A model generated the notes under the pieces. The model made no database searches. It was not told the DNA's origin and saw nothing but the letters and a program-made list of their open reading frames with translations. The position numbers were made by a program, and so were the translations under genes. This document shows, piece by piece, positions 9,982-64,000 of a stretch of 64,000 nt of DNA. Every line of letters starts with the position of its first letter. Position 1 is the first letter of the stretch. This DNA is from Macrostomum lignano (Eukaryota). The stretch spans positions 692,859 through 756,858 of the forward strand of contig NIVC01000221.1 of NCBI GenBank assembly GCA_002269645.1, given 5' to 3'.

Positions 9982-10823
9982 GCTGGCCACCTCAGCGGGC
10001 ACAGCGGCGAATCTCAGCAGGCGGCACATGCGGCTCGAAGGCGCGAAGGCGCAGCCCTGACAGTCCGGGCTGCCGTAGCAGATGGTGGCGCATTCAACGG
10101 CACTGCTGGCTGCGATGCTGCGGTGAGTGATGGAGCTGGCGGAGGCTGTGATGTTCAGCAGAGACGTCACGGGCAGTTTCGACATCACTGGATCGACTGC
10201 AGAAGGTTTGGTTGAAAATAATTTTTAAATTTAATACTTTAATCGATCATATTTATTCGACTACTGCTCATAAATCGTCCAGCTCGAACTAAATTCAAAG
10301 ATGACTTAAGAACACTGCGTTTTTAAGTCGTCCTTGGGCAAAATTACCCTTGTGTTTACACTTGTACAAACTGCGTAAATCCGAAACGCTCACTTGATGA
10401 GTAAGTCAATTCGTAGATGGAATTTTTCAACACTCCACCGCAAATCTGAGACGAGTTTCCGCTGCAAGGTCTGCTGCAGTCGCCAGCCGGTGCGATGCCG
10501 TGCGATCCGTAGGCTAAGCCGCAGCAGCAGTAGCGCGAGGCCTGAACTCCAAAGTAGCGAAATCGGCCGTAAGAGCACATCTGGCTGCACAGTTGCAGTG
10601 TCATCTTTGCCTCATCGTAAAAAAATCCTGGGACATCGGGTTGAGTCTCAAACTGTCCGAACTTTTTCACCCCCTCCAGTCCTACAAGATCTCGGTTGCC
10701 ATTACCGCCATCCACGTAGCAGCCGACGTGGCGAAACTCCAACGGTTGAGGCGGCACGGAAGCAGCGGCGCAGCGTCCGGAACCGGCTGCCCAGCAGAGC
10801 AGCAAAGCGCAGAGTTTCAGCAT
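9952..10823 (-). CDS. Secreted WSC-domain + PAN/apple-like domain protein (2 exons, about 224 aa)
   Basis: Exons 10394-10823 and 9952-10196, GT-AG intron, phase 1, joining in frame as ..TYSS-I-DPVMSK... Signal peptide MLKLCALLLCWAAGSG; WSC pattern GCYVD..MTLQLCSQMC..YFGVQASRYCCCG..CSRPCSGNSSQICGG; PAN-like SAVECATICYGSPDCQGCAFAPSSRMCRL. Confidence 0.85.
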
Positions 10824-10949: not shown

Positions 10950-12320
10950 ATGGATTGGCTGAGGTTTCACCTCGATGTGCATGAGAGATTTTCGACTGAT
11001 GGATAGCTTAATGGCGGACACCTGCGAGACTCGCCAAAAGGCGGTGTCAATTGTTTTTGTAGATTTCTGCAAAGCATTTGACCAGGTCAGCCGAGCGGCC
11101 ATTGACTGGCTCCTCCAGCAGCATGGAGTTCCTCAGCTACTGGTTCAGGCGATCATGGACCTCTACAGCTCGTCGAAGGCTTTTGTCCAGACTGACCACG
11201 GCCCTACATCTGAATTTGCCACCACCTTTGGGGTCCGGCAAGGTGACACCCTATCACCGTTTCTATTCGTTATTCTGATCGACTACGTCATGCGGCTGGC
11301 TCTGCGCGACGAAGACGGCTATGAAGTGGTGCCTCGCCGCAGCTTCCGCTTTCCCTGTGTCAAGCTGACCTGCCTCTCCTACGCAGACGACTTGGCGCTG
11401 ACCTGCTGCATTCCCGAAGCTGCGCAGAGGGCGGTGAGTCGGCTGGCTGACGAGGGGAAGCACGTGGGGCTCCACATCAACTACGGCAAGACAGAGGTGC
11501 TGCATGTTGGCATTGCCAACTCTTCACCGCTGCTTCTACTGGACGGCAACACCATTGCCCCGTGCAACCAGTTCAAGTATCTGGGCGTCCTGACTCGGAT
11601 GCCATTGTCAACAACCGCAAGCAGCTGGCGTGGCGGGCCTCCCACCTTCTCCGCTCCATCTTCAACTGCCGACTCGCCACCGACAGCCTGAAGGTCGCCC
11701 TCTTCCGCTCGGCAGTTGAGGCGGTGCTGACCTATGGGCTGGAAGCTGTTCCCATGACTGCCACTCGTGAGGCGAGCTTGGAGGCCTATCATCGTCACCT
11801 CCTGCTCAATGCCTTTGGGCATCCGATTCCCCGAGCGCGTGAGCAACGCTGAGCTGACGGCCCGGACCCGCGTGCCGCCCCTGGGTCGCACTTTGCAGAA
11901 GCGACACCAAATGTTGATAGGACTCTGCCTGCGAGCCCACACACGGGGCACCGGGCCCCTGATCGCCGACCTGCTGCTCAGGCCGCCCTGTGTGGAGACT
12001 CCGCCGAGGCAAGGCGCTGCACCACTCTGACTGACACGTCGGTTCTCACTGACTTGCCTAGGCTCTGGGCCTTAGCCCTCAGTCTGCAACTAGGCCGGAG
12101 TCAGCTGTTTTCCACCAGCGGGTGCTTCGCTGACCCCTGCGCCAGCGTCTGTTTGATAATAATAATAATAATAATAATGATAATAATAATGTTAATAATA
12201 ATAATAATGTTAATAATAATATAGTAATAATAATAATAATGTTAATAATAATAATAATGTTAATAATATAATAATGTTAATAATAATAATAAATAACAAT
12301 AAATAATATTAATAATGGCG
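10950..12320 (+). mobile_element. 5'-truncated RTE-like non-LTR retrotransposon with (TAA)n tail
   Basis: RT motifs IVFVDFCKAFDQV, GVRQGDTLSPFLF, LSYADDL, INYGKTE, FKYLG; frameshift near 11600 into a C-terminal VLTYGLEA region; TAA-repeat tail at about 12155-12315. Confidence 0.92.
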
Positions 12321-14165: not shown

Positions 14166-36316
<22,151 letters not shown>

Positions 36317-42137: not shown

Positions 42138-44334
42138 TCAGTTACTGTTGCCTTTCTGCCGAACGTTTGCCACTTTAAGCGACTTTTTCTTTGCTAAAGC
42201 CTTGCTGACACCTTTGGGTCGCTTCTTGGGCTTCTGGTGCTTGCTAGAAGGCCTGGAAGGCCCAGCTGCACTAGCTCCATCCTCCTGCATCATGAGCTGG
42301 CGCTGGCACTCAACAAACTGCTGCTTCTCTCTGCGCTCCTCGCGTTTCTCATCAAACCTGAGCTCGTCAAGCCGGATTTCCGCTTCGCGACGGGCGACCA
42401 CAACATCCGTAACAATCTTGGCCACCTGCGCTTCATCAACTTTCATTTCTTCTAGGCGACGATCAATTAAGCGTTCGACATCTTTTAATAGGGCCAGTTC
42501 GAATTGGTTGGCAAGCAGGATGGCAGTGCCAGGGCGGCCAGCGCGTGCGGTGCGTCCGCACCTGTGCACATAGTCCTTGGGCCTTGTGGGCACGTTGTGA
42601 CTGATGACCAAGTCCACTAGGGGGATGTCAAGGCCGCGGCTGCCCACATCAGTGGAGATGAGTACGCGTACCTAAAATTGTCGGGGAAGATGCCACTAGG
42701 TACTGAGATGTGTTAGACATCAGGTAACACAGGTAAAGTAGGAAAGTAGTGACTTTCACTGTAAAGTCACATAATCTAGCGAAATTTCTTTATCAAATTC
42801 GAATCCAACACTCGCGCTAGCTAAACCTGGTTGGCTATGGTGTTTTTACAAAATTTATATATACTTTATCAGCTTACAATGGTTTGCTTATTGTCAGCAC
42901 AGCATGTCTGACTAGATGAGAAAGTCAAACTCGCTATATACCCGGTGTACTAGCTGGAAATTATTATGTGTTCGATGATCAGTGGAATGAAGCCAGACCC
43001 CAGTTTAGACCTCAAAAGTGAGCTGAGCTAGATTGGGCCTGCGCCCTAGGCTGAGTTTCGTCCGTCTGACTTTGCCCTCTCTCCTTGCTGCTCTCTCATT
43101 GGCGGAGCTAGATTGGGCCTGCGCCCTAGGCTGAGTTTCGTCCGTCTGACTTTGCCCTCTCTCCTTGCTGCTCTCTCATTGGCTGAGCTAGATTGGGCCT
43201 GCTCCCTAGGCTGAGTTTCGTCCGTCTGACTTTGCCCTCTCTCCTTGCTGCTCTCTCATTGGCTGAGCCAGATTGGGCCTGCCTCTAGACTGTGTTTCGT
43301 CCGTTTTGCGTTCATCTGTGTACATTCTTTAACCCAGATACTCCTGGGGCGGCTAACCTCGAGAAAGCCAGATTGGGCCTGCCTCTAGAATCTGTGTACA
43401 TTCTTGATACTCCTGCGGCTAACCTCGAGAAAGAGGAAATTTTTGGCTACCACATTAAATTTAAGTGACACTGCGCAGATACAAACTACTGAAAACCGAG
43501 TAAACGCTCTTTACTCGCAATTGCGAGTGACATACCTACATAAGTATGAACCTACAAAACACACACAGATGGAGTCTATCAGACCAAGCACCCACCTGGT
43601 TAGACTTGAACCTAGCCAGAGAGTCCAACCGCTGCCGCTGAGTCAGGGCGGAATGCAGCAGAGCAGAGTCCAGTCCAAGCGCTTTAAACATCAAACCAAG
43701 CAGGTGACACCATTTACACTTGTTAGTGAACACCACAATCAATGAAGTCGGATTCTTAGCCAAGAAATCCGACACAATGTGTATTAGAAACGCATCCTTG
43801 ACCTGGGCGGGCATCAGGCAGTAGTACTGGTTCAAGGACTCCGGCAAGCGCGCCCCCGAACTGCCCGACCCTGACGCTGATGCAGCGGAAATGTCGTCAA
43901 CTTCTGCAGCTGAACTGTTGAACACGAAAGGCGGCTGTCGACGTTTGGACTTCGCTTCTCCTTCATCGGTAGTTTCTCCGTCTTCTCCAGCTGCTGCAGT
44001 CGCCAGAGCTGCGCTCACCGCTTCTGTGTAGGTGGCGCTAAACAACAGCGTCTGTCTGTCTGCCGGCACGGCCTCAACTATGGCTGCCAGATCGCGACCG
44101 AAATTGTCTTCTAGTAGGCGATCGGCCTCGTCCAGTATGAGGTAGCGAAGGCTGGAAAAGTGCAAATCTGACGAATTGCTGCGCACGTGATCGGCGAGTC
44201 GGCCTGCGAGGATCAAATTAATGTCAATAATTCAAAATCAATGCATCTGTTCATTTGTCTTATGAGTACCTATCAATCAACCAAACGATCTGTCTGTCTA
44301 CCACTCTACCTGTCTATCTATCTATCTATCTATC

Positions 44335-44381
<47 letters not shown>

Positions 44382-44406
44382 CCTATCTATCTATCTATCT
44401 ATCTAC

Positions 44407-44440
<34 letters not shown>

Positions 44441-44481
44441 CTGTATCTATCTGTCTGTCTATCTATCTATCTATCTATCTG

Positions 44482-44512
<31 letters not shown>

Positions 44513-44589
44513 GTGTATCTATCTATCTATCAATCTATCTATCTACCTATCTATCTATCTATCTATCTATCTCTGTATCTATCTGTCTG

Positions 44590-44660
<71 letters not shown>

Positions 44661-44663
44661 GTG

Positions 44664-44732
<69 letters not shown>

Positions 44733-45348
44733 GTGTATCTATCTATCTATCTATGTATTTATCCAAATCCCCCTTCATACCAGGCGTCCCAACAATGAAA
44801 TGCGGCCTGGCTGCTAACATCCGGCCCTGCTCAACCACATCCCGCCCGCCAGTCACGGTGAGCAGTCGGAAGTTGAGCGCCTGGCACAGAACCCGCAGCT
44901 GATCAGTAATCTGAAAGGCCAGCTCCCTAGTCGGGGTGACAACCAGAGCGTACGGACCAACCGGATCGTCCAGCAGTTGGTGCATGATAGGCAGGGCGAA
45001 GGCCAGGGTCTTGCCGGAGCCGGTCTCAGCGCAGCCAATCACATCCCGACCAGCCAGCACAGCCGGGATGCAGGCCCTCTGCACAGGGGTTGGCTTTGTG
45101 ATTGACAGAGCCGAGAGCTGACTCAGCAGCCAAGGCTTTAAGCCTAACGACGAGAATTCGCTGGTTGATGACTGAAAAGTTAGGAGAGCAGAGACTAGGT
45201 GTGGCAAAGTTACGCGCAATACGGGCATATGATTTCTATGGCATCTAGTGTGGTCTGTGGTTTGACTCCGGCCCTCGAAGCCTCTCTATCCGGCGTTCGG
45301 GTCCTTTGAAACTTCACAATAGCAATCCGGCCCGATTAATGTTTGTGT

Positions 45349-47412: not shown

Positions 47413-49581
47413 TCAAATGTCGTAACTATTCGCATCGGAACTTGACTTCTCGATATTATCCGGTATGTTAGGCGTAGTGGACGTCTCATCAACAGTATCA
47501 ATTGACGGATTATTGGGCTGAAATGTAGGCTGAGGCCCGTCCTTGCTATTTAAACGCCTTTTTTCTTGGTCGCTTGACTCGTTGAAGCTGCTCTGACTCC
47601 TGAGACGCGTCCATCTACGACAGACAAACCAGAATGCGATACAAATAATAGCAGCGACTACAAGACAGAGCACCACGTATCCGATGATGTTCGAAATCGA
47701 AATATCCTGTTTTTGAATAACCGATTTAGCAAGTTTTTCGCCTTCAGTACTATTATCTACAGGATTCCGACACTGCCGCATAGCTGTGGTGTTGAAACAG
47801 GCGCGAGATTCTTTAAAAGCTGTGCACTTTTTAGCATTATAAATTGCCATATAGTGAGTTGGACAAGGCCAGCAGGCGCAGTAAGAATCGTAATAGAAAT
47901 ATCCAGATTCAATTGCACAATAAACTTTTCTGATATTCTTGCAGTCATTTTGGAAGTTTTTCGGCACCTGCAATCGAAAAATTATTTAACGAGCCTATTT
48001 TTAGAGCTGAATTTTAATTCGGTCTTTTTTTATTAGAGGCAGGGGGGTTGTGTGCACCCTGGCGCACTTTAAGCGACATAGGCACACAACCGGCGAGAGG
48101 CATTACTGCCCATTCCGCCGACTCCCCTGAGCAGGCATACAAGCGCGCGGATACGTACGCAGGCACACACTCACACAGAAGTGTACAGCGGCCCACGACT
48201 TTATTTATATTTAGGCATGTACACTTCACAGTGCCTTGGGGGTTGGCTCTCAAGGCCGTTAATTGCACGAGCAGAGCCAAGCCGAGATTCCAATTCAGCC
48301 CCAAATTAATGTGACTGCACTTGGAATCGAGCCTGGGTCGCTGGCACACCAGAGCAGCTGCGCTACCGCTGGGCTACGGCTCCCCTATAATTCGGTCTTT
48401 CGCATCGCGTAAATTCTCTAAATAATGACATCTTTTCAGTCATAAGGAGGCATCGAGGAGAGAAAAGTCACCCGAAAAAAAGTCATGTGTCGCTTCAGAG
48501 TCGTTGCAGGTAAACACAGGTAAAATCGGAAAAGAAGTGAATCTAAAACGACTACATGTCACGGTACAATTCGTCAAATAGTGGACTCTTTAATAGTGAC
48601 TCCAGGGCCTTAGAGTCGTATCTGAGGCGGGCCAGAGCCTTGCATCTGACTCACTTTATGAATTAGAATCGCACTTCGCGTTCATAAAACTCTATATTTA
48701 GTCTACTTGAGTTAGTAAAATGTCAAACACAAAAACGACTATTAGACGACTTTTGCGACTCTTTAAAGATACGGCAACTCATGTGATATGCGCTCGTGAC
48801 TCGACTTAACAGTCGCCTCTCCGTCGCATTACAGTCGTTTGAGTCGTTAAAAAGTCAAAAGAGAAGCCCGAGTCCAGGGGCGTCGCCATAGATTTTATGG
48901 TGGGGGGGGACAAAAGCCGAGAATTCTAAATGTACATTATTTCCGAATCGGTGTTGTCATTGATTTTTTTGAAACCGCAGGCACTCATTTTAGCGCCGCA
49001 TGCTCTCATTTTGGCGCCGCAGGCACTCATTTTGGCGCCGCAGGCACTCATTTTGGCGCCGCAGGCACTCATTTTGGCGCCACAGGCACTCATTTTGGCG
49101 CTGCAGGCACTCATTTTGGCGCCCTGAAGCAAATTGACTATTGATTTCCATAACGGATCAACAAGGTGGGAGGGGGACAAATGGACAAGCATCGGATGTC
49201 CCCCATTGCTTCTACTGGGGGGGGCACTTGTCCCACCCCCCAGTGGCGTCAGTGCGTCCCGACATTCTTGAAAAAGTTGTTGCCGAGGATTCAATGCTAA
49301 ATGGCACGAATATTCCATCACCAATGGCTCGCAATCGACGCAAATACAGTCGCCATTGTAATACTGCCGATCCAAATCGCATTCTGGCGGGAGGTAGCAA
49401 TCTAACTGGTTTTTAGGCGTGTCTACAAAACATCTGGCTCGGTTGCTTGACAACAGGAACAGCTATATTATAAATAGGTCCAGTTTTGAAATTTATTCAC
49501 CTTTACATCCTGCTGATCATTGCCGAAACACCGACAGATAATAACAGCAGCGGCAATTAGCAGCTGAATTTGAAGATGCAT
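47413..49581 (-). CDS. TNFR-like single-CRD type I membrane protein A (2 exons, about 211 aa)
   Basis: Signal-peptide exon 49501-49581 (MHLQIQLLIAAAVIICRCFG..VK|GT, phase 0) joined to exon 47413-47967 (acceptor TTGCAG). CRD C..C..YYDSYCACWPC..C..C..C, TM IIGYVVLCLVVAAIICIAFWFVC-RR, S/T/P-rich tail. The exon join is inferred. Confidence 0.7.
48875..49248. mobile_element. hAT-like MITE (CAGGGGCGTCGCCA left TIR, truncated right end) with an internal 21-bp repeat
   Basis: Left end resembles the TIR of the 37448 element; ctcattttggcgccgcaggca repeats at 48985-49120; only TGGCG of the right TIR remains, fused to the receptor duplicate. Confidence 0.6.
49246..49462 (-). pseudogene. Partial duplicate of the receptor B ectodomain (CRD only, no TM), inside intron 1 of receptor A
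   Basis: LFLLSSNRARCFVDTPKNQLDCYLPPECDLDRQYYNGDCICVDCEPLV.EYSC..L.PRQQL.QECRDALT is near-identical to the 54536-54753 region; homology stops before the last Cys, stalk and TM. Confidence 0.8.
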
Positions 49582-50227
49582 CTGATCAGCTGATTAGGGA
49601 AGATTTAAAATAGTAAGATGCCGCTACTACTCTTAAAAGTAGTAATTCATAGCGAAATCGTATCTGAAATGAGCGACAAAGGTGGCAGATAAATTTGAAA
49701 CTGATTAACTGAAAAAAACTGCGATTATCCTACTCACAAGTAGCCAAATAAAAAGTGTCAAGTCAAAAAACCGGTAAATGACTACAAAAATAGACTAAAA
49801 TTTACAATCTGGCAGGTGCATGGATGTGTATTTTGTTTGAAATGGCAACTGCTAAAAAGATAAAAATGTGGGAAAATTTCAAGTTGGCAAACTCGTCTTT
49901 TTTGCCTGAGAGATTTACCAGCGCAGTAAAACATGAACTCGCGGCACGTTAGTAAAGTGCATGGCTAAGCAGAGAATTAAAACTATTGTAAAATTTATAT
50001 TTAAACTCGCAATAGACAGTTTGTCAAGGCTCTTGAGATAAAGCAGAAGTCAAACGGAATTTACACTACTAATAAGTAGAAATGTAAAAAGAAAGAAGCA
50101 AAATTTAAATATATTGTAGAATTGTTTTAACAGTTGGCATTATCTGTAATTTTTCGTTGATTAAAAGACTATAATATATTCGTTAAAGTTTGAGTACACT
50201 AAATAAATTATTACGACAAGGAGCCTT

Positions 50228-51143
50228 CAGTCAGTCAGGCAGTCAGTCAGTCAGTCAGTCAGTCAGTCAGTCAGTCAGTCAGTCAGTCAGTCAGTCAGTC
50301 AGTCAGTCAGTCAGTCAGTCACCCACTCACTCAAGTCAGTCCAGTCAGTCAGTCAGTCAGTCAGTCAGTCAGTCAGTCAGTCAGTCAGTCAGTCAGTCAG
50401 TCAGTCAGTCAGTCAGTCAGTCAGTCAGTCACCCACTCACTCAAGTCAGTCCAGTCAGTCAGTCAGTCAGTCAGTCAGTCAGTCAGTCAGTCAGTCAGTC
50501 AGTCAGTCAGTCAGTCAGTCAGTCAGTCAGTCAGTCAGTCAGTCAGTCAGTCAGTCAGTCAGTCAGTCAGTCAGTCAGTCAGTCAGTCAGTCAGTCAGTC
50601 AGTCAGTCAGTCAGTCAGTCAGTCAGTCAGTCACCCACTCACTCAAGTCAGTCCAGTCAGTCAGTCAGTCAGTCAGTCAGTCAGTCAGTCAGTCAGTCAG
50701 TCAGTCAGTCAGTCAGTCAGTCAGTCAGTCAGTCAGTCAGTCACCCACTCACTCAAGTCAGTCCAGTCAGTCAGTCAGTCAGTCAGTCAGTCAGTCAGTC
50801 AGTCAGTCAGTCAGTCAGTCAGTCAGTCAGTCAGTCAGTCAGTCAGTCAGTCAGTCAGTCACCCACTCACTCAAGTCAGTCCAGTCAGTCAGTCAGTCAG
50901 TCAGTCAGTCAGTCAGTCAGTCAGTCAGTCAGTCAGTCAGTCACCCACTCACTCAAGTCAGTCCAGTCAGTCAGTCAGTCAGTCAGTCAGTCAGTCAGTC
51001 AGTCAGTCAGTCAGTCAGTCAGTCAGTCAGTCAGTCAGTCAGTCACCCACTCACTCAAGTCAGTCCAGTCAGTCAGTCAGTCAGTCAGTCAGTCAGTCAG
51101 TCAGTCAGTCACCCACTTACTCAAGTCAGTCCAGTCAGTCAGT
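50228..51143. repeat. Compound (CAGT)n array punctuated by a recurrent CACCCACTCACTCAAGTCAGTC spacer
   Basis: Eight spacer copies separate CAGT runs of variable length. Confidence 0.95.
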
Positions 51144-51629
51144 CACAAAGCCAAACAAATAAGATTGCATTCAGTATCAACTGAAAGAAAACAATCAATA
51201 ATTTCGCTAATGAAGAAAGGAATGCAAGGCAATACTGTACAAAGATACAAAGACAGATGTCTGTACATTACTAATGTCAGTGTCGGTATAACAAAATGCG
51301 TCAGTTGAATCACGCAATTACTATGAGCATGACAAAAACATTGATGACAGCTGAGTACTGTTGGCATCGGTGTAGAAAAGCAGAGACACAGAGATCTGCT
51401 TTAAAAAATCCATTGGCAGGGCAACTGATTGAAATATTACTATAGGTCTTGTACTAGAGTACATTATTGTGGTTAGAAATATTAATTCCTACTTTATATA
51501 ACTTTATTTCTATGAATATTGTCGTCTTATGCGAGATCCGGGATATATGATAGAATAGCTTTGAGATTTTATGTGAAATATTAGAGATCTCAAATGAAAT
51601 GTTAAAAATCTCATGAAAGATAATTAAGA

Positions 51630-51990
51630 CTTCATATGAGATTAGAGATCTCAAGTGAGATAAGAGATCTCATGTGAGATTAGAAATCTCATGCGGAAGA
51701 TTCGAGATCTCATATGAAAGATTAGAAATCTCATGAGATATTTGAGATCTCATATGAAAGATTAGAAATCTCATGAGATATTTGAGATCTCATATGAAAG
51801 ATTAGAAATCTCATGAGATATTTGAGATCTCATATGAAAGATTAGAAATCTCATGAGCAATTAGAGACTTTATGTGAGATTAGAGATCTCATGCGAGAGA
51901 TTCGAGATCTCATATGAAAGATTAGAAATCTCATGAAAGATAATTGGGACTTCATGTGGGATTAGAGATTTCATGTAAGATTCAGAATAT
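51630..51990. repeat. 40-bp tandem repeat (gagatctcatatgaaagattagaaatctcatgagatattt)
   Basis: Period 40 at 51721, 51761, 51801, 51841, with degenerate flanks. Confidence 0.9.
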
Positions 51991-52177
51991 CATATGTAGG
52001 AGATTTCAGCTCAGTTTAAAGTACAAAAAGTAACCATTTCAAATACAGCAAAAAACCTGAATGATTTAATTATTGAAAAGATAGTGAGCAGACAGAAAAA
52101 CTACAAAGTCAGTCTGAGAACAATATAATAAGCGGAGCTGATTATGCACATAAACAGACATGTCACATGATGTAGGA

Positions 52178-54786
52178 TCACACTTTTGATAGGATTTGGT
52201 CGCGGCACTTTAACCCATAAGCATTAGTAGCCGCAGGCGCCAGCATAGGCGCAGACAGATGCAGCAGGGGATTCAACTGCCTAACGATTGAGCACACGGA
52301 CATGCTAGACGCTGGTATGTTTGGCGCGAGAGCCTCCGATGAGGCACCGTCTTGTACTGAGCAGTTCTCGCTTAACCACTTCGAGCAACGTTGAGCGCCT
52401 TTGGATAAATATCTGCTGGACTGGTCTGGGCACTTTATTGGCTGACAGGTTCTACAGGGGCCGTTGCAGCCGCTGTCGGTGCCCCCGGAGTGCTCCACGA
52501 TGGGGGACTGCTCTCTGCAGGTGGGTTAATTATCAGAGATGATTGTTATCTGACTCAGGTAGGTTAATTATCAGATATGATTGTTATCTGACTCAGGTAG
52601 GTTAATTATCAGATATGATTGTTATCTGACTCAGGTAGGTTAATTATCAGAGATGATTGTTATATCTGACTCGGGTAGGTTAACTATCAGAGATGATTGT
52701 TATATCTGACTCAGGTAGGTTAACTATCAGAGATGATTGTTATCTGACTCAGGTAGTTTAATTATCAGATATGATTGTTATATCTGACTCAGGTAGGTTA
52801 ATTATCAGATATGATTGTTATCTGACTCAGGTAGGTTAATTATCAGAGATGATTGTTATCTGACTCGGGTAGGTTAATTATCAGATATGATTGTTATCTG
52901 ACTCAGGTAGGTTAATTATCAGATATGATTGTTATCTGACTCAGGTAGGTTAATTATCAGATACGGTTGTTATCTGACTCAGGTAGGTTAAATATCAGAG
53001 ATGATTGTTATCTGACTCGGGTAGGTTAACTATCAGAGATGATTGTTATCTGACTCGGGTAGGTTAACTATCAGAGATGTTTGTTATCTGACTCAGGTAG
53101 GTTAATTATCAGAGATGATTGTTATCTGACTCAGGTAGGTTAAATATCAGAGATGATTTTTATCTGACTCAGGTAGGTTAATTATCAGAGATGATTGTTA
53201 TCTGACTCAGGTAGGTTAAATATCAGAGATGATTGTTATCTGACTCAGGTAGGTTAACTATCAGAGATGTTTGTTATCTGACTCAGGTAGGTTAATTATC
53301 AGAGATGATTGTTATCTGACTCAGGTAGGTTAAATATCAGAGATGATTTTTATCTGACTCAGGTAGGTTAATTATCAGATATGATTGTTATCTGACTCAG
53401 GTAGGTTAAATATCAGAGATGATTTTTATCTGACTCAGGTAGGTTAATTATCAGATATGATTGTTATCTGACTCAGGTAGGTTAATTATCAGATACGGTT
53501 GTTATCTGACTCAGGTAGGTTAAATATCAGATATGGTTGTTATCTGACTCAGGTAGGTTAATTATCAGATATGATTGTTATCTGACTCGGGTAGGTTAAT
53601 TATCAGATATGATTGTTATCTGACTCAGGTAGGTTAATTATCAGATATGATTGTTATCTGACTCAGGTAGGTTAAATATCAGATATGGTTGTTATCTGAC
53701 TCAGGTAGGTTAATTATCAGATATGATTGTTATCTGACTCGGGTAGGTTAATTATCAGATACGGTTGTTATCTGACTCAGGTAGGTTAAATATCAGATAT
53801 GGTTGTTATCTGACTCGGGTAGGTTAATTATCAGATATGATTGTTATCTGACTCAGGTAGGTTAATTATCAGATATGATTGTTATCTGACTCAGGTAGGT
53901 TAAATATCAGATATGGTTGTTATCTGACTCAGGTAGGTTAATTATCAGATATGATTGTTATCTGACTCGGGTAGGTTAATTATCAGATACGGTTGTTATC
54001 TGACTCAGGTAGGTTAAATATCAGATATGGTTGTTATCTGACTCGGGTAGGTTAATTATCAGATACGGTTGTTATCTGACTCAGGTAGGTTAAATATCAG
54101 ATATGGTTGTTATCTGACTCGGGTAGGTTAACTATCAGATACGGTTGCTATCTGACTCAGGTAGGTTAAATATCAGATATGGTTGTTATCTGACTTAGAT
54201 AGGTTAATTGTCAGATAAGAGATATTACTTACTCATCGAGTTCATCAGTAGACTCAACTGACTCGTTTAATCCACCCTGACGCCCGACTCCGCTCCGGCC
54301 GCGAGCGCAGAACCGGATTATTATGACCGTAAATAGTATGGCCAATGCAAAAAAGCAGGCTAATAAACTGAATATCAAAGCCATATTGGAGTTCGAAGGA
54401 TGCTGAACTGTTATTGATGAAGACAACGTCGCAGTCGTGGTTGACATTTCAGTTGAAGTATGCTGAATACGCTCAGTGGTAGCGCCTGCCACTGGCGATA
54501 AGCTTACATTTCGCATAGTTGCCTGACAATAGCCCAGCGTCAGTGCGTCTCGACATTCTTGTAAAAGTTGTTGTCGAGGAATCAATGCTGAATAGCACGA
54601 ATATTCATTTACCAATGGCTCGCAATCGACACACATACAGTCGCCATTGTAATACTGCCGATCCAAATCGCATTCTGGCGGGAGGTAGCAATCTAACTGG
54701 TTCTTAGGCGTGTCTACAAAACCGCTGGCTCGGTTGCTTGACAACAGGAACAGCAACAATATGCTTAGTAGCATTCGTTGATCCAT
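52178..54786 (-). CDS. TNFR-like single-CRD type I membrane protein B (2 exons, about 296 aa)
   Basis: Exon 54233-54786 encodes signal MDQRMLLSILLLFLLSS, an 8-Cys CRD, a S/T-rich stalk and TM ALIFSLLACFFALAILFTVIII-RF. Phase-2 donor GA|GTAAGT joins acceptor CTGCAG|A at 52514, in frame with exon 52178-52514 (Cys-containing cytoplasmic tail). Confidence 0.78.
52525..54220. repeat. 38-bp minisatellite (about 44 copies) filling the receptor B intron
   Basis: Unit caggtaggttaattatcagatatgattgttatctgact, with an internal TCAGATA..TATCTGA inverted repeat. Confidence 0.96.
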
Positions 54787-55671
54787 GCTGTTTAAATCAA
54801 TCAATTGCCGCTAAGCCGTCACGTATTGGACATTTGCGTTGACGAAAGAAAAAGCCTCAACAAAAGCTCTTCTTGTTGTTAATGTTGACGACGGCTGAAG
54901 AGTAGACAGAACGAGAGGCTGGGTGAAGTGAAAAGGTTTCTAACAAAAATGATGAGCCTAGCATATAATCTGTAGCTATTGCGTTGGTAAGAGCGAGCCA
55001 GAGAGGTAGAGACTATATAGGAGTTGCAGCGGCAGAGAAGAGCGGTGAAGACGCAGTAGTAATAACAGAAAAAACTGCTTACGAAGTTCCCTCGAAGACA
55101 CTTTGTCAACAGCATCTCTAAAAGAAACAGCTCTCTATTCTAAAATTAACTATTAGACATGGTCCCCGCTACTAAAAATAGAACACTTGGTCTAGCTGTA
55201 AGCTTAAAAACGAAGCGGGTGATGCTATAATATAATACAAACTTCTTCTACTTATATAGCGTAATAACTGAACTCTAAAGTGGAACGATGCTTATTTTAA
55301 CAGAACCCCCCCTTCCCAAAGCCCAAGTGCGAGTTGATTCACTGCTAGCTGGTAACTACGCAATTGAAAGTAAAGTAGCGGAATTTATCTGGCGCAGATG
55401 CTAATAAATATGATAAATTTTTAGAGAAACAAAAACGTTTATTATTGCAGCGAGAGAAGTTATAATGCGCGATTAACAGTAAAATAGGGGCGCTATTATT
55501 AAATATTATAACAAATTTTGTAAATTTCTACAATGTAAAAGAGCGCATTGTGAGCTAGAAGACAAAAGATAAAAAGATAACTATTGATTTGAATATGCGG
55601 TTGGCGATGATTCTTCGATAGCAAAACCTTAAAGCAATACAATATAGTTAAAACAACACGAAACGGTCTCT

Positions 55672-56375
55672 GTGAGGAGGGGGCGCCAGTCTCTGTATGG
55701 GAGGGGGCGCCAGTCTTTGCGGGGAGGGGGCGCCAGTCTTTGCGGGGAGGGGGCGCCAATCTCTGTATGGGAGGGGGCGCCAGTCTTTGCGGGGGAGGGG
55801 CGCCAATCTCTGTATGGGAGGGGGCGCCAGTCTTTGCGGGGAGGGGGCGCCAATCTCTGTATGGGAGGGGGCGCCAGTCTTTGCGGGGGAGGGGGCGCCA
55901 ATCTCTGTATGGGAGGGGGCGCCAGTCTTTGCGGGGAGGGGCGCCAATCTCTGTATGGGAGGGGGCGCCAGTCTTTGCGGGGAGGGGGCGCCAATCTCTG
56001 TATGGGAGGGGGCGCCAGTCTTTGCGGGGGAGGGGCGCCAATCTCTGTATAGGAGGGGGCGCCAGTCTGTATGGGAGAGGGCGCCAGTCTCTGTATGGGA
56101 GGGGCGCCAGTCTTTGCGGGGGAGGGCGCCAATCTCTGTATGGAGGGGGCGCCAGTCTTTGCGGGGGAGGGGCGCCAATCTCTGTATAGGAGGGGGCGCA
56201 AGTCTGTATGGGAGGGGCGCTAGTCTCTGTATGGGAGGGGCGCCAGTCTCTGTATGAGAAGGGGCGCCAGTCTCTGTATGAGAAGGGGCGCCAATCTCTG
56301 TATGAGAAGGGGCGCCAGTCTCTGTATGAGAAGGGGCGCCAATCTCTGTATGAGAAGGGGCGCCAGTCTCTGCGG
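55672..56375. repeat. GC-rich GGGGCGCCA-based minisatellite
   Basis: Alternating gggcgccaatctctgtatggga and gggcgccagtctttgcgggga subunits; same core motif as inside the hAT-like MITEs. Confidence 0.92.
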
Positions 56376-57484
56376 GGCGGGGTGCCAGTTGCGACTGTAA
56401 ATAATTTTAAGACTTTGAGATTGCGGTAGCACTTTACCCGAAGGGGGCTAGCTAGTGTGTCCCGGGCCGGCTTGACTAATGATTCTGCGTCTTTGTCTGA
56501 GCTGCCTATCGTTCAAATAAAACAATTATGCGAACGACATTGTAATTTTAACAGTTAAATAAAGACGTAAGTAGGCACATTGTAAAAAGGGAAAAATGGA
56601 GGAGGGGCACAAAAAGGGATATCAACTGATTTAAACAAGCGTTTGGAGTGATTTGACAATAGAGCAATCTAAAACAATATACGAGCGTATTATACGAAGG
56701 AGTATGGATATGAGAACCACTGTTAGCAACAGAGCGTACTGATTTTTATAGCAAAAACTGCTCAAAATTTGCTTGCCTGCCAGTCTCTGAGGGCCACATT
56801 TAAGGGGGGGGGCGCCAGTCTAAGGGGCGAAGTCTCTTTGGGGGGGGGGGGCGCTAGTCTTGGAAGGGGGCGACAGTCTCGGAGGGGGGGGACGCTAGTC
56901 TCCGAGTTTCTGGGAGACAGGAAGACAGTCTCTGCGGGGAGGACGTTGTGAAATACTCTGTCTTCCAGCAGGGACTCGCTCTAGTATTGCTTTTTCGATC
57001 CAATAAACTTTTGAAGCCGCTATTGATCGCTAGATGATCTTCGTAGTACTGATAGAAAGAGGTTAGGCCCTTAAAATATTACTGGCAAGCTTAATATGTG
57101 CTTTCACTGATGGGTACAAACGATGCCGTTAAAATACCAATGACAATGACAAGCTCAACTGTGTGACGAATATAATATTCCTTAGTAAAAGTTTTCATAT
57201 ATGAATTGTTTCATTGCTAATCCGAGAGTCTTGGGTTCAGGTTGCCAACCGGAACGACGACCCAATTTCTTGTTTTTTTTCATCTATTTTTCTCGGAGTG
57301 ACTCATTAAATTGCTTGATACTATCTGCTGGATATCAAAGCGATCTAGAAAGCTAGCGACAAGAAACTTGCTGATAATAAGCGTTAAAATAGGCTTCGAA
57401 GCACTTAGCCTTTGGCGTGGCGAAAAATATTGTGCACTCTTCACTATTGTGCATTCCTATTGAGGAATGTTCAACCAACGATGA

Positions 57485-58297
57485 TTAAAATTTGACAGGG
57501 TTTAATTTGCTTTGCATGAACTGTTGCTCAGGCCGCCTAATCGCGTCAAACTGTTCATCACCATTCTGCGCACAGAGAGGCAAAGGTATAACTGGTGCCG
57601 CAACCTGCGGTTCCTGATCGGAAGTTAGAGCTTCCGTTGCAGTTTCAGCAGCCGGTTCATGCCAACCTTCGGAGGTGAGTTTAGTTGACGGTGACGCCGC
57701 CTCCGACTGAGACAGAGACTGTGCATCAATAGCTTGAGTATCTCCAGACTCAACTGCAGAAACGTCTTCGCCACTGTAGCATTGAGTAGCCCAATACCGA
57801 ATTTTAAAGGACAGAAGTTGACTAGATCGATTGAGTCGAAATACTAGCAAGGCAAAGCAAAATGAGACAAACAACAAGCCGAAAGCGATAGCAACCGGTT
57901 GAATTCCAAACGCTAAAGAGCGGTTATGCAACGGGAGGTCATTGCTTGGAATCATAGGCCGAGCAGAATTACCATTTTCAAATTTCTCTGGAAGACCAAG
58001 TCTTGATGGCAAAACCGATTCATTACAATAAGAATACCTCTTAATTAGAATACAGAATTCGTCTTTGGAACTATGCGTGCTAGTGCAAGATTGGAGGACA
58101 TCGTCGCAAGACTGACAATTGCATAGAAAGTCGTGGTACTGATTGGCCAAACAATGTACAAGGTTCTGCATAGATTCACTGCAATCTTCGCGACTTCGTG
58201 GAAAGCTGCCAATTGATTTAACTATGTTGAATTTAAAGTTTACAATCCATAGCCATAGTTGCTGATAATAAATAAGTTGATTGAAAAAGTTGCGCAT
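57485..58297 (-). CDS. TNFR-like single-CRD type I membrane protein C (single exon, 270 aa)
   Basis: Intact ATG ORF with a weakly hydrophobic N-terminus, CRD C..CLANQYHDFLCNCQSC..C..DEFC..YSYC, TM PVAIAFGLLFVSFCFALLVF-R and an acidic S/T/P-rich tail. Confidence 0.78.
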   Translation of the reverse strand: MRNFFNQLIYYQQLWLWIVNFKFNIVKSIGSFPRSREDCSESMQNLVHCLANQYHDFLCNCQSCDDVLQSCTSTHSSKDEFCILIKRYSYCNESVLPSRLGLPEKFENGNSARPMIPSNDLPLHNRSLAFGIQPVAIAFGLLFVSFCFALLVFRLNRSSQLLSFKIRYWATQCYSGEDVSAVESGDTQAIDAQSLSQSEAASPSTKLTSEGWHEPAAETATEALTSDQEPQVAAPVIPLPLCAQNGDEQFDAIRRPEQQFMQSKLNPVKF

Positions 58298-58534
58298 TTT
58301 TTGTACAAATCTGTTGACTTTACAGACCTTTGCGGTATGGCTCGAGCGCCATAAAATTCGTTAAAAACATAGCTAATTGTAAAGGTAAATGAGCAAGCGG
58401 TATGGTAGTGTGTGTGTGTGTGGACTCCCTAATCATTAGAATTCAATGAGATGTGTTCAACTTTAAGTGGGACAGCTTCGATATGGGAAAATGAGAGAAA
58501 AACAGTGATGCTTAACAAAGCATCAGAAGACTCG

Positions 58535-59717
58535 TTTGCCAATGCAATGGAGCTTTTGTCTATGGTAGCAAGGCTATGGCATTTAATTTGGTCCAACAAG
58601 CATCAATTTGGCCCAACAAGCACCAATTTGGTCCAACAAGCACCAATTTGGTCCAACAAGCATCAATTTGGTCCAACAAGCACCAATTTGGTCCAACAAG
58701 CATCAATTTGGTCCAACAAGCACCAATTTGGTCCAACAAGCATCAATTCGGTCCAACAAGCATCAATTCGGTCTAACAAGCACCAATTTGGTCCAACAAG
58801 CACCAATTTGGTCCAACAAGCACCAATTTGTCCAACAAGCATCAATTTGGTCCAACAAGCACCAATTTGGTCCAACAAGCATCAATTTGGTCCAACAAGC
58901 ACCAATTTGGTCCAACAAGCACCAATTTGGTCCAACAAGCATCAATTTGGTCCAACAAGCACCAATTTGGTCCAACAAGCATCAATTCGGTCCAACAAGC
59001 ATCAATTCGGTCTAACAAGCACCAAATTTGGTCCAACAAGCACCAATTTGGTCCAACAAGCATCAATTTGGTCCAACAAGCACCAATTTGGTCCAACAAG
59101 CACCAATTTGGTCCAACAAGCATCAATTTGGTCCAAAAAGCACCAATTTGGTCCAACAAGCATCAATTTGGTCCAACAAGCACCAATTTGGTCCAACAAG
59201 CACCAATTTGGTCCAACAAGCACCAATTTGGTCCAAAAAGCACCAATTTGTCCAACAAGCATCAATTTGGTCCAACAAGCCACCAATTTGGTCCAACAAG
59301 CATCAATTTGGTCCATAGCTTTATTTTCAACTGTTGCGAATGAGCAAGATCAGCCCCAGAATTGTGTATGATATGCTAGGCTGTTGAACCAATGTCATTG
59401 GCTTGCGATCGAAGCGCTCGACAGAGGTGAACACCAAAGGACATTGCAAGGCTGTTCAATGTAAAAGAAAGATGGTTTACAGCATCCAGCAGCGCTTTGA
59501 AACCACTGCCGGCAGAGTCGCCTGCGAAAAGAAAGATAAATTCTATTTGACGTTGCACAAAATGTAGCAGAATTTGAAGAAACAGTTCCAGTTGGTTATC
59601 AGATTTTTGACTATCGGTAGAGCTCTGGAAAAGCGTTTGACCGAAATTGATGCTTGTTGGACTAAATTAAATGCCGCTCTGACAGCCTCGCTACCATAGA
59701 CAAACATTGGCAAATGT
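58535..59717. mobile_element. Inverted-repeat element containing an expanded 20-bp minisatellite
   Basis: 58535-58615 is the diverged reverse complement of 59640-59717; the motif (c/t)caatttggtccaacaagca at the inner end of the left arm is tandemly amplified over 58590-59315. Confidence 0.72.
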
Positions 59718-60939
59718 GGATTAACTTAAGATGCGCGTAAATTTAAATAAGCCGCAAAAAAGCTATATTTGATCGAACTATGAGCTAAATTATACCTTTG
59801 CTGAAATTGAATGGTTAGGTCCTACAATGAATGGCGAAATGATTAACACGTAATTAGAACTTTTACCAAATTTTAAAGAAATATATACGGCTGTAATTTT
59901 ATTTACAAAATTTACGAATATATGGTATTATGATAGATACTTCTAACCTGCAAGAGTATATGTAGGTTAAAAATATTACAATGGGAAAATCAGTTAAGGT
60001 TAGTGTTGTTTGCATAAAAGAGAGTACGAGCGTATTCGACTATATATCGAAAGCTACACGTCATCTTCACATATATAAAAAGTGCGATAAAGTACATCAC
60101 AAATTGTGCCCCTAAGAAGAAAAATAATGCAAACATTCGAATCAAAACAAAAAACATTCGCTTCAAAAGTAGCAGTAATTAGTGATATTGGAGACTGCTA
60201 AAAGTACGAATTTCTGGACCTTTACGGCGTGTAAATTTAGTACCAAGGACGACTTAGGAATTGCAGGAAACTTCATTTCCTACAAACCTGAAAGGCTGGT
60301 CTTTAATACACTACTGAGTTAGGAACTGTTCGCTAAAAGGATAACAAGCTTCTTATACGCCATAAAACTTGCTTAGTACAAACTGGATATCCATTAAAGC
60401 GAGCACAGGTCGGTCAAACGTCTTCCATAGTTAATATGTGATAAATTGAAACACAAAAAATTCGAAGAGTGCCTGGAAAGTTCTGACACTTTTGATTCTA
60501 GAGCAAAACGTTAGCAGCTGCAGCACAACTTTGGTATCATTTTTAATGAATTCAGTCCGCGGTGTCATTTCATTCAAAAGTTATGTGTGAAAAACCATCG
60601 CAGTGCCCCTAAAATACCCCCCCCCCACTTCATTCCTCAACTTAAGTCTACCGCGGCGTAGCTAAGCGTCACTCGCAAATTGAGAGACTTTACCTGCACT
60701 CTCAAAAATGGCGACCACAAACGGAACTTCTGTAATGGCGAATTTCGATGTTATAAATTTTGTTATAAATTTGAATGAAATGACCAAAATACAGGCGACT
60801 AAACTCTATAAGTGTCAGACTTTTCCATACACCCCTCGTACACGTAGGCTGAAATTTTAGCCACAACTCATTGCACAGCTGCTCTATTATTGACTGGTAA
60901 AAACTGTAAAACTATTCAACATGCTGAGCACGGGTTATA

Positions 60940-61370
60940 CAACGACGTCTTAAGTAGAAGGATGGGAAAAATACACTACGGAGATAGGAAGTTTTCATTT
61001 TTCAGCACGAAAATTGCTATTGCTTTTGATAGGAGGCCGATCCAGTGTTCATCTTTGATATGTTGTGCCTTTCTTATTGCTCTATCGATATTATCGATAT
61101 TCATATGAATACTTTGAATATTGATATTGAATACTTATCTTAGGAGGCAGATCCAGTGTTCATCTTTTGATATGTTGTGCCTTTCTTATTGCTCTATCGA
61201 TACATAGTAGGTTACGAATGGCTATGATGGCTGAAAAATATGCACCATATTCGATAAAGCATAAGAAAGGCACAACATATCAAAAGATGAACACTGGATC
61301 TGCCTGGCAGAAAAACCTGCCTTCTCTAAACATTGCAAAGAAACGAGGTTTCCCATCCTTCTACTTGAGT
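60940..61370. mobile_element. Palindromic MITE-like element with a perfect 44-bp inner inverted repeat
   Basis: 61146-61189 and 61261-61304 are exact reverse complements; outer arms aagtagaaggatgggaaa / tttcccatccttctactt; same family as the 6032-7610 arms. Confidence 0.78.
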
Positions 61371-62248
61371 TGTCCTTGGGGTTATATATAACTATTTGAA
61401 CGCATTTGTCGCATACAACTTGCTGATGAATATCACAGGGAAAATTAACCGAAAAGTTGTGCAATTTGGTTTAGCAGTTTTACTATTCAATAGATCAACC
61501 TATGCAAGTTGTGGGAAAAGTTGGGTCGTTCACAGCAACTTTCGTAATTTATTAACGAAATATCAGCAATATGAACAGATAATACATTAAATAACTATTG
61601 CCTACACAAATAATTATTCAATTTATTACAAAAATGAAAACAATTTAGAATAAAAATTAGCGCCTGATAATTTATAAGTAGCATAAAACTGATTAAATAT
61701 GGCGCTTCATATTGTTAAAAAATTACCATAAGATACACAATATCAACATATAAGCGGAATGTGTACATATGGATTGTTTACTCGTAAATGGGCGCTAAAA
61801 TAAATCAATTTGTCCAAAAATACGCACGTGTTTTTAGAAAAAATTGCCAAGAACAGACACAACCATAACTTGTAGGCCATAAAATCACGCGGTTACCTCG
61901 TGGATTTGTTTCTTTGCTTTGCGCTCTGGTCCGCCCATTGCACTAGGATAAAAAGTGAGTTTGACATATTAGCTTGCCTCAGATCATAGAATATGACAAA
62001 GGCTTCCATTCTTGAATAAGTGAATAAATTTGGCATCCTCAAAAGCTACTAGTGGCATTGGCACTAGCAGATGCTGCCACTTTTTTGCGCGCATTGTCTT
62101 GATCGCGCCTGCTCCAGCGTAGCAGACTGTTGCTCGGTAGTGCCACTAGCTGGAATGCTGGCGTACTGCCCTGCCAGGACTGGATCCATCACGTCTAGTA
62201 GTTGCGCAGGCGGTGTCGTCTGAGTGACTCCGGCGCTTAGGCTGCGCG

Positions 62249-62906
62249 CTAGCAGCGGTCGGGACGACTGAGTCTGCTCTGGAGGCGATGACGGTACCGA
62301 AGCGGCCCGACGAATATGCGCCATTGTTGCATAAACTTTGGCAATCTCTTTGAGTATGTACGGCCAAGAAGCAGTGCTGCTACTAGTGCTGCGAAAATTA
62401 TAATTAATACCAAACCGATAGCAAGAAAGACAACATAATTTGGCTGCTCATAGTTTGTAGTTGACTGATAATTGTAGGCAGCTGCAGCATTATTATTAGT
62501 GGACGCAAATCTACTAGCAACCGAAGCGACACTGTTCAATGTGGAAAGATGGGTGATGGTGGAAGCTTCACGTGTTGTACTAGCGCTTGTAGAAGGCAAA
62601 GTAGTAGTTTGGTACTGTTGTCGCAGTAATACAATTCTTTTAATTTTGAACAAAACTCGTCACTAGGACGTGGCTGACTGCAATGCTGCCAAGTGGCCTC
62701 ACAATGTACACAAGTGCAGTGGACATCGTAGTACTCATTTTCGGAGCAATTTAGCATGTTCTGAGTTTGCCGGACGCACTCGTACCGACTCATTGGGTAG
62801 CTCAGTGGATTTTTACACTCATCGACAGAACCAAATTAGACATCAAGTTGATCTGAATCAGAGTTACAAAAGTCAGAAATTTCCAAATTTGGTTATTTGC
62901 TGCCAT
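62249..62906 (-). pseudogene. TNFR-like single-CRD type I membrane protein D with two apparent 1-nt frameshifts
   Basis: ATG at 62906 (MAANNQIWKFLTFVTLIQINL, signal-like); frameshift near 62835 into ..ECVRQTQNMLNCSENEYYDVHCTCVHCEATWQHC..DEFC..LYYC; frameshift near 62625 into a T/S-rich stalk and TM VVFLAIGLVLIIIFAALVAALLL-GR. Confidence 0.7.
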
Positions 62907-64000
62907 CACCAGACTTCTCCAGGGAAGAGAGCGCTATCGCAGCCCGTTTTAGCTCACATGCATGAAATTTTAGCAAGGCATTTAAAGAGAGCATATAGAC
63001 GACATTGATATACAAACAAGTAGGGGACACATTTAAAAATCATTTCGTTAAGATGAACAGAAACTGTAACTGAAAAAGTACAAAAAATCAACTCTTTACC
63101 AGTACTATTTCTGCATTAAAATTAAAAGTCTACCATTTGTCATCTTGCCTTATGAGACTATAAGGGCCTTTAATATTTTGTAGCCATAAATACTTATTTA
63201 AAGCAGTGAATTAAATTTAAAGACATCAATATTAAATTTATGACGTTTATTTTTACAAGCAAAATTTACAATGTTTACAACAGATCAAGTGGCGCTTGGA
63301 AGTAATAATTTAAATCAATAAAATAACGTGCAAACAAAAAAGACAAAAAACAACTGGCGGATATTAAATAAGCTTCTTTTGATTTTGATTAATTGCTTTC
63401 GTTATTTCAAACACAATAGTTTTTCGAAAACATATAAAAGTAATTCTCCAGCTACACACTAGCATTGAATGCCAAGTATAATATAAGCAGATATGAGAGA
63501 GCATATGCAAATAGGACGGAACGAAAACGCACAATTTAATATTTTGACATGGGCTCGCAATATGTTGTGCTTCGAATGTACAAAACGGAATAATATTTGC
63601 CGGTGAAAAAATGACGCATTATTAGATTAATATATGCCAATCCCACCGCCTAAAACATTGGGTTCATCGCTGCGAGTGGTCTGGTAGCGCATTAGCGTTG
63701 TCTTTTAAATGCCATAGCGCGAACGGGTGACGCAACACCTAGCACCATTTTCCTGGCCACGCTGGAAACCTGACCATCGCTATTAACAACAACAGCAACA
63801 TTGATAGTCAATTAGCAGGTTTTAAGTCACACTTGGTAATTTAGCTGTTTTAAAAACTAGAAAGAAAGACGCATAAAGACATTTAAATTTTTTAAGTACA
63901 GTGTACATTTTCTTTAGTGATATTTATCTGGTGCTGTTTAAAACAGAACAAGGCTTTTTAAAAATTCAAAAATTAAGAATTGGAATACTTCACACGATAT

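Follow-up and report, generated by a model that had tools for sequence, protein, structure and literature searches.

Five genes of the flatworm Macrostomum lignano form a tandem array and encode surface proteins that each carry a single small extracellular domain built on eight cysteines (the 8-Cys domain). Four of them (genes A, B, C and D) lie on the minus strand of the 64 kb of contig NIVC01000221.1 (assembly Mlig_3_7, GCA_002269645.1) analysed here, which is called the window and to whose positions all coordinates refer; the fifth (gene E) lies just past window position 64000. It is proposed, with a probability of about 45%, that the 8-Cys domain is a divergent, minimal cysteine-rich domain (CRD) of the tumour necrosis factor receptor (TNFR) type and that the proteins are surface ligand-binding receptors or co-receptors. 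The genes themselves are already deposited in GenBank and UniProt as hypothetical or automatically named proteins; what is newly described is the array, its fifth member E, the gene models as corrected here and the 8-Cys framework.

An earlier note on this DNA had described a co-oriented minus-strand cluster with a common Cys scaffold, and this description holds: when the whole window is translated in six frames, the motif [YF][YHF][DN]-x(1,4)-C-x-C-x2-C is found at exactly five sites (47863, 49331, 54622, 58106 and 62701), always on the minus strand, within the open reading frames (ORFs) that the note had quoted and between 47.4 and 62.8 kb. Outside these five sites, neither the six-frame motif search nor a scan with subgroup hidden Markov models (HMMs) found a further family copy in the window. 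The products of A, B, C and D are all type I membrane proteins, and the genes are arranged head-to-tail; E is a fifth full member about 1.7 kb upstream of D, so that the array order is E-D-C-B-A. The common architecture comprises a signal peptide, one 8-Cys domain, an N-glycosylation site, a stalk that is short or S/T-rich (S/T-rich in B, D and E), a transmembrane (TM) helix, for which a hydrophobic stretch is present in each of A, B, C and D, and a disordered tail that is acidic, S/T/P/Q-rich and of low complexity and has no recognisable domain. The single architecture previously ascribed to A-D is correct for the type I layout of all four and needs amendment in detail, as the signal peptide of A is on a separate exon, that of C is weak, B has two exons and D is split over three frames in the window contig.

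The alignment of the four full copies A-D contains eight invariant cysteines (C1 to C8) and one invariant tyrosine, with the spacing C1-x5-10-C2-x9-12-C3-x-C4-x2-C5-x6-12-C6-x8-13-C7-x8-C8 followed by NxS/T. Because MAFFT misaligned the Cys framework when E or longer flanks were added, we used alignments without misplaced cysteines and a script-built Cys-anchored alignment. C and D are clearly related (BLASTP E=8e-12, 38% over 61 aa) and do share the DEFC-x7-YC element that the note had pointed out; the A-B and B-C pairs are not significant by BLASTP (E 0.26-0.30), nor are A/B against C/D in pairwise comparison. Searched against 1016 six-frame pieces, the subgroup HMMs gave reciprocal best non-self matches (A+B to D with E=0.0099; C+D+E to B with E=0.16), and the subgroups A/B and C/D/E are also alike in architecture, orientation and adjacency. 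Each has its own signature before C1, PKN(F)Q(N/L)DC in A and B and S[YF]PxSxxxC in C, D and E. A further motif, P-x-I-P-[AD]-[STN], recurs in the tails as PNIPDN (A, 47440-47520), PNIPAS (B exon 2, 52310-52330), PGIPAS (D, ~62150) and DIPDT (E, ~8250 of sibling contig L004), where it sits in the sole segment of the E tail that is identical between alleles; to our knowledge it fits no known TRAF consensus.

The coding regions are under selective constraint relative to their flanks, with A as the exception. The neopolyploid genome carries the same array on several sibling contigs: L001/L003 (NIVC01001619.1), a diverged copy with ~2% substitutions in non-coding flanks and 92-97% BLAST identity; L002 (NIVC01005074.1), of the same haplotype as the window contig; L004; and L006. 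Between the window and L001, C and both B exons differ by 17 substitutions in 1704 nt and one in-frame indel, against 47 substitutions in 2084 nt and 20 gap openings in the flanks, and the per-site ratio of nonsynonymous to synonymous differences (pN/pS) comes to 0.19 in C and to 0.41 in B exon 1. In L001 the ORF of C is unbroken: its 813 nt hold 5 substitutions, of which 2 are nonsynonymous, and no indel, while its flanks show 2.2-2.6% substitutions and many indels. The E alleles differ in the 8-Cys domain by 1 nonsynonymous and 2 synonymous changes and in the tail by 15 and 3, with two in-frame indels, the last 19 residues being identical. Outside A the 8-Cys domains are nearly invariant between haplotypes. 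The L001 allele of A (P0005) shows 13 nonsynonymous against 4 synonymous differences (pN/pS 0.84), which spare all cysteines and cluster in the hairpin and the juxtamembrane region: in the predicted hairpin/CxCxxC stretch (47860-47910) 4/16 residues differ between haplotypes or homeologs (ESGYFYYDSYCACWPC vs ETGNFYHDSYCACWHC), and the juxtamembrane segment reads VCRRWTRLRS in one and FRRRRRRLSS in the other.

Within the protein libraries searched, the family has no members outside this lineage. When 1.84 billion representative proteins were searched with the family profile, no relative outside the family came up, only the B ortholog and a coiled-coil false positive (P0002), and word-indexed homology searches with C, D and the five-protein alignment returned the family's own entries only. 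The view of the array as a lineage-specific tandem expansion of extreme divergence is supported by the tandem duplicates, the very divergent paralogs and the lack of outside relatives in these libraries.

Gene models of the array

The features of the array within the window are as follows.

47413..47967, minus strand: gene A exon 2, with the 8-Cys domain, short stalk, TM, tail and stop
47968..49500 (1533 nt), minus strand: gene A intron, acceptor ttttcgattgcag/GTG at 47968/47967
49246..49463, minus strand: B', a 218-nt fragment of gene B inside the A intron
49501..49581, minus strand: gene A exon 1, signal peptide MHLQIQLLIAAAVIICRCFGNDQQDVK; donor AAG/GTGAAT
52178..52514, minus strand: gene B exon 2, with the remaining cytoplasmic tail, PNIPAS motif and stop; acceptor cctgcag/A at 52515/52514
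52515..54232 (1718 nt), minus strand: gene B intron, nearly all 38-bp minisatellite (52518-54217, 44.6 copies)
54233..54786, minus strand: gene B exon 1, with the signal peptide, 8-Cys domain, S/T stalk, TM and tail start
57485..58297, minus strand: gene C, a single-exon ORF of 270 aa with a long acidic tail and no GenBank annotation
62039..62906, minus strand: gene D, with the 8-Cys domain (62778..62623), S/T stalk, TM (62437..62366) and tail

GenBank coding sequences (CDS) exist for A, B, D and E (BOX15_Mlig000476g3/g4, Mlig002974g1, Mlig030720g8, Mlig030720g6 and Mlig032714g4). The Mlig_3_7 annotation derives solely from RNA-seq transcripts assembled under genome guidance, for which there was trans-splice and poly(A) evidence (PMC5730564), and these four genes therefore have transcript-derived models. 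The gene ids hint at common transcription units: A (Mlig000476.g3/g4) is numbered like the downstream DEAD-box helicase (Mlig000476.g1/g5), D and B share one id number (Mlig030720.g6 and g8), and UniProt A0A1I8IZQ0 is a B-to-A read-through (fusion) model; transcription of the array could be operon-like and trans-spliced. The ids Mlig030720, Mlig000476, Mlig002974 and Mlig032714 were not found in the main texts of papers, and the supplements of PMC5946080, PMC12896417 and PMC5816591 contain none of the family gene ids; among the matches listed, PMC7336406 contains only the helicase genes Mlig000476.g1 and g5, classed as non-specific.

In gene A, exon 2 encodes the 8-Cys domain (47943..47770), the TM (47688..47620) and an acidic, S/T/P/N-rich tail with PNIPDN, and the joint translation of exons 1 and 2 is identical, residue for residue, to the GenBank protein P0004 (PAA81060.1/PAA87695.1, 211 aa). 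A 38-nt intron linking A exon 1 to B' was rejected; the 1533-nt intron yields P0004 exactly. Besides B', this intron contains a 21-bp minisatellite (48975-49123) and a tRNA-like stretch (48358-48380; GCCGTAGCCCAGCGGTAGCGCAG...GGCTCGATTCC within 48300-48380), which occurs once in the window and may be a tRNA-derived short interspersed element; ARAGORN and Rfam gave no match in the window, this stretch included.

B' is a polymorphic gene fragment and not a gene. It spans the region from mid signal peptide to just past C7 of B, with 93.5% nucleotide identity over 217 nt and 88% identity at the protein level, is directly preceded by a TAG stop, lacks ATG, C8, stalk and TM, and continues into a minisatellite. 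It is missing from NIVC01001619.1, which has unrelated sequence there, whereas L005 and L006 carry it; it is not part of any gene model. The fifth copy had been taken for a CRD-only duplicate of B, which is right as to its derivation from B, but it is a fragment without start codon or C8; its suggested role as a decoy is not borne out, given the upstream stop, the missing ATG, the location within the A intron and the absence from L001.

In gene B, exon 1 carries the 8-Cys domain at 54690..54526 and the TM at 54384..54310, and the splice junction reproduces ...ELDEEQSPIVEH... of P0001 (PAA65776.1) and of the window-haplotype model P0006. The donor GA/GTAAGT overlaps an in-frame TAA, so that an unspliced B transcript would yield a 185-aa protein with a very short tail; an exact-protein look-up of this form gave no match. 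B exon 2 also encodes a Cys-containing stretch (CNGPCRTCQPIKCPDQSSRYLSKGAQRCSKWLSENC, 52400-52480) on the predicted cytoplasmic side, without a Pfam match. In gene C the 8-Cys domain is at 58183..58025 and the TM at 57895..57839, and the signal peptide is weak. Exact-protein look-ups of C, its L001 allele and the E alleles found no entry in the protein collection searched. Gene E encodes 258 aa (CKDKINVRLLQACSNQSENYFNSQCECQSC...) and has a 3-beta-HSD/NmrA-like gene next to it; this gene beyond E and a DEAD-box helicase gene (42138-45228; 1614-nt CDS) bound the array.

Gene D is split over three frames in the window contig by one-base indels at ~62815, 62611 and 62312, with further indels at 62171, 62159 and 62116. 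The same gene is an intact 290-aa ORF (P0003 = PAA46071.1/PAA63852.1/PAA65777.1) in L001/L003, L002 and L004, and these copies are mutually identical. Comparison of the window copy with the three intact ones revealed indel events only, namely four isolated one-base indels (A6->A5, A4->A3, GG->G and one more; three in base runs, and two that compensate each other) and a single small complex event in which 2 substituted bases adjoin a 2-base gap. Over ~6.8 kb compared, the window differs from L002, its own haplotype, by 9 mismatches against ~80 gapped bases (~70 gap openings); the gaps are concentrated at 59.4-64 kb, where, for example, 1.6 kb holds 3 mismatches and 35 gap openings. Window positions 59400-64000 thus look like a locally unpolished consensus, the source of the apparent frameshifts of D. 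Many gaps with few mismatches are what consensus indel errors leave behind, so in the living animal D is most likely intact and probably not a pseudogene; the suspicion that it might be one fails on the intact, identical copies in three sibling contigs, the same-haplotype L002 included.

TNFR identity of the 8-Cys domain

The case for a TNFR-type domain begins with the spacing. The classical TNFR repeat follows the pattern C-x4-6-[FYH]-x-C-x0-2-C-x2-C-x-C-x-[DNEQSKP]-x2-C, to which C2..C7 are a near-fit, with an aromatic residue after the first of these cysteines and [DNEQS]-x2-C before the last; the misfits are loops one to two residues short in C and D, a loop one residue long in A and a C6-C7 interval too long in B. 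UniProt has automatically named D (A0A267EXW8) and the B-A fusion model (A0A1I8IZQ0) 'TNFR-Cys domain-containing protein', a name that presumably reflects a match to the PROSITE profile or rule. The AlphaFold2 (AF2) models of C and D are alike, with a hairpin (15-17/23-25) and two helices (~26-32 and 40-50), at a low to medium confidence (pLDDT, the predicted local distance difference test, 70.7 for C and 63.4 for D). A further point in favour is that hhalign places the hairpin and CxxC over BCMA/TACI with P=0.0033.

Other results fail to confirm this identity or speak against it. Compared with the classical pattern the loops are short, and the cysteines number eight (extra C1 and C8) in place of six. 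Pfam TNFR_c6 (PF00020) and the BCMA, TACI and Fn14 families (PF09257, PF09305 and PF12191) gave no match at E<=10 to A, B, B', C, D, E or the B-A fusion, an hmmsearch of the family profile against PDB sequences gave 0 matches at E<=10, and Foldseek searches of PDB and BFVD with the C and D models, themselves of low to medium confidence, returned no TNFR and nothing below E=2.8; the Pfam and Foldseek checks that the earlier note had proposed thus both came back without a TNFR. The hhalign match to BCMA/TACI, over 20 columns of the hairpin and CxxC, has a probability of only 9.7%, and in a shuffle calibration of the Cys-anchored alignment the BCMA/TACI score of 14.5 compares with 9.2 +/- 2.3 for column-shuffled controls, 12/300 of which reach it; nine canonical CRDs (TNFR1, CD40 and NGFR) gave no signal (probability 0.2%, P=0.38). 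The BCMA sequence and the nine CRD sequences used here were verified, the latter against PDB. At its tip the hairpin reads YDSY in A, YNGD in B, HDFL in C, YDVH in D and FNSQ in E, so the BCMA-type DxL tip is present in one of the five members (C); the short TRAF-type motifs found by eye, SDQE (A and C) and PAQLLD (D), with B and E having neither, are at chance level; and C lacks a transcript-derived model, while its signal peptide is poor. Apart from TM-region noise, no member matches any Pfam family at E<=10 in these scans, and hence no death domain was found; the note had likewise seen none. Other Cys-rich folds were considered. EGF was rejected, as it needs three cysteines before CxC; laminin-EGF, somatomedin-B, PSI, Ly6/uPAR and thyroglobulin type-1 (CWCV) were rejected for misfitting spacing and the lack of any Pfam family at E<=10; and DSL, despite a similar start (C-x3-4-YY-x-x-x-C), continues differently and likewise has no Pfam family at E<=10. 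Since spacing, UniProt names and the AF2 hairpin with two helices stand against negative or near-background results from Pfam, PDB profile, hhalign and Foldseek searches, the identification as a single-CRD TNFR-like protein is partly supported, and TNFR ancestry is plausible rather than demonstrated.

If the 8-Cys domain is of the TNFR type, the hairpin would be closed by C2-C3 and followed by a C4xxC5...C6...C7 core with an extra C1-C8 staple, a connectivity proposed by analogy. Ligands, plausibly the TNF-family ligands of M. lignano, would be bound through the variable hairpin, and signalling may proceed through short linear motifs in the disordered tail rather than through a death domain. 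An extended version, which we consider rather doubtful, is that the array is a private tandem set of minimal, death-domain-less 8-Cys TNF receptors that diversified alongside the expanded TNF ligands of M. lignano, with the ligand-contacting hairpin of A hypervariable between haplotypes.

There is a substantial chance, if one below even odds, that the domain is instead an orphan, lineage-specific disulfide-rich module that mimics TNFR spacing and serves another surface role (cell-cell or gamete recognition, adhesion or mucin-like protection) without TNF signalling. Such an origin would fit the lack of outside homologs in 1.84 billion representative proteins and in the word-indexed searches, the absence of any Pfam, PDB or Foldseek match, a BCMA/TACI profile similarity near the shuffle background and nil against canonical CRDs, eight cysteines instead of six, the S/T-rich stalks of B, D and E, and the fast evolution of the tails and the A hairpin between haplotypes, as is common in recognition or reproductive proteins. 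It leaves as coincidence that the spacing, the aromatic residue and the polar-x2-C all fall at TNFR-pattern places, and it sits uneasily with a UniProt name suggesting that D and A or B passed the TNFR-Cys rule, presumably a curated PROSITE profile, and with an N-terminal CRD and a TM within ~100 aa, the layout of known single-CRD TNFRs. Several TNF ligands are present in the species, while only one receptor type is described per platyhelminth species (PMC7519573); this, too, speaks against an orphan module.

A birth-and-death immune-receptor array with a secreted decoy (B') and a decaying pseudogene (D), the scenario of the note in its fuller form, is improbable. Its paralogs are indeed tandem yet extremely divergent, B' is a true haplotype difference (with it in L005 and L006, without it in L001), and the A hairpin differs at four positions between haplotypes (pN/pS 0.84); but the supposed decoy is a truncated fragment with TAG upstream, without C8 or gene model, inside the A intron, the supposed pseudogene is intact and identical in three other contigs, its window copy showing the consensus-error signature, and nothing in the analysis bears on immunity. 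We find it very hard to believe that the ORFs are non-functional, that is, chance ORFs or dead copies in repeat-rich DNA. Minisatellites in the region do generate long spurious ORFs, C has no annotated model and homologs are lacking elsewhere, but A, B, D and E have transcript-derived CDS models, the splice junctions reproduce database proteins exactly, the ORFs are kept across diverged haplotypes with in-frame indels only and reduced substitution rates, and the eight cysteines are invariant in every copy.

Should the proteins be TNFRs, they would be candidates for the receptor diversity that is missing against the several Macrostomum ligands, would do away with the notion that each flatworm has a single NGFR-like TNFR and would extend the single-CRD design of BCMA and Grindelwald to an early-branching flatworm. 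M. lignano is a regeneration model open to RNA interference and transgenesis, which allows direct tests. Should they not be TNFRs, the array offers a compact 8-Cys ectodomain without detectable relatives in the libraries searched, as lineage-specific families commonly do, and its interest would be narrower.

The rest of the window

Positions 59581-40001 of the window are 100.0% identical to NIVC01000221.1:730271-752439, and the database proteins that match its genes carry the label Macrostomum lignano, the species under which papers cite the Mlig_3_7 assembly. The window is animal nuclear DNA, rich in mini- and microsatellites and in retroelements. A Ty3/gypsy-like element (20235-24235) encodes a gag zinc knuckle, reverse transcriptase, RNase H and integrase in two long ORFs, and its GC content is 62-65% against a background of ~42%. 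The 1909-aa ORF at 25199-30928 consists of a genuine TRPM SLOG-domain exon (30300-30928) and then an in-frame 5-kb, 32-bp minisatellite (25228-30284), and its length is a repeat artefact; a further TRPM-like channel membrane exon lies at 17398-18426. A minus-strand ORF (10356-10823) encodes a signal peptide and a WSC domain (Pfam E=5.9e-14) and is adjoined by a fragment of a non-long-terminal-repeat reverse transcriptase (10975-11691), of which other fragments occur elsewhere in the window.

Comparison with known TNF receptor systems

Among the closest designs is that of BCMA, TACI and BAFF-R (TNFRSF17, 13B and 13C), which are likewise type I proteins with one small CRD and a short tail without death domain. 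In its N-terminal half BCMA has a Cys-closed beta-hairpin with an aromatic-Asp pair, followed by CxxC, as seen when BCMA CSQNEYFDSLLHACIPC is set beside D CSENEYYDVHCTCVHC, and its fold of a hairpin and two helices agrees with the AF2 prediction for C and D. The array proteins differ from this group, which has six cysteines or, in BAFF-R, four: theirs number eight, a CxC and an outer C1...C8 pair are additional, and the hairpin is three residues shorter; BCMA entries were not retrieved by Foldseek, and there was no Pfam match to BCMA-Tall_bind or TACI-CRD2. The classical TNFR repeat (PF00020) resembles the 8-Cys domain in its C2..C7 spacing, apart from loop shortfalls of one to two residues in C, D and A, but classical receptors have two to six repeats instead of one, and the helices predicted here do not fit the classical B2 module. 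Drosophila Grindelwald and other Grnd-like TNFRs, together with Fn14, share one small CRD, a nearby N-glycosylation site, a TM and a short tail without death domain; for the Grnd-like receptors this likeness is one of description, and for Fn14 no Pfam match (stn_TNFRSF12A) appeared.

PF00020 misses known single-CRD Grnd receptors, according to a preprint (10.1101/2024.07.27.603686), as it misses the array proteins. A 2026 version of that preprint, working with in-house HMMs, counts 6 Eiger-like, 16 Wgn-like and 1 Grnd-like proteins in M. lignano. For canonical TNF ligands, 4 genomic and 6 further sequences have been reported from this species (PMC7519573). The platyhelminth NGFR-like TNFR (the SmTNFR family) is reported as one gene per species and combines several CRDs of canonical type with a death domain that is predicted (Bertevello et al. 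2020, PMC7519573); it comes from the same phylum, and the array described here differs from it in having one atypical CRD per protein, no death domain and five genes.

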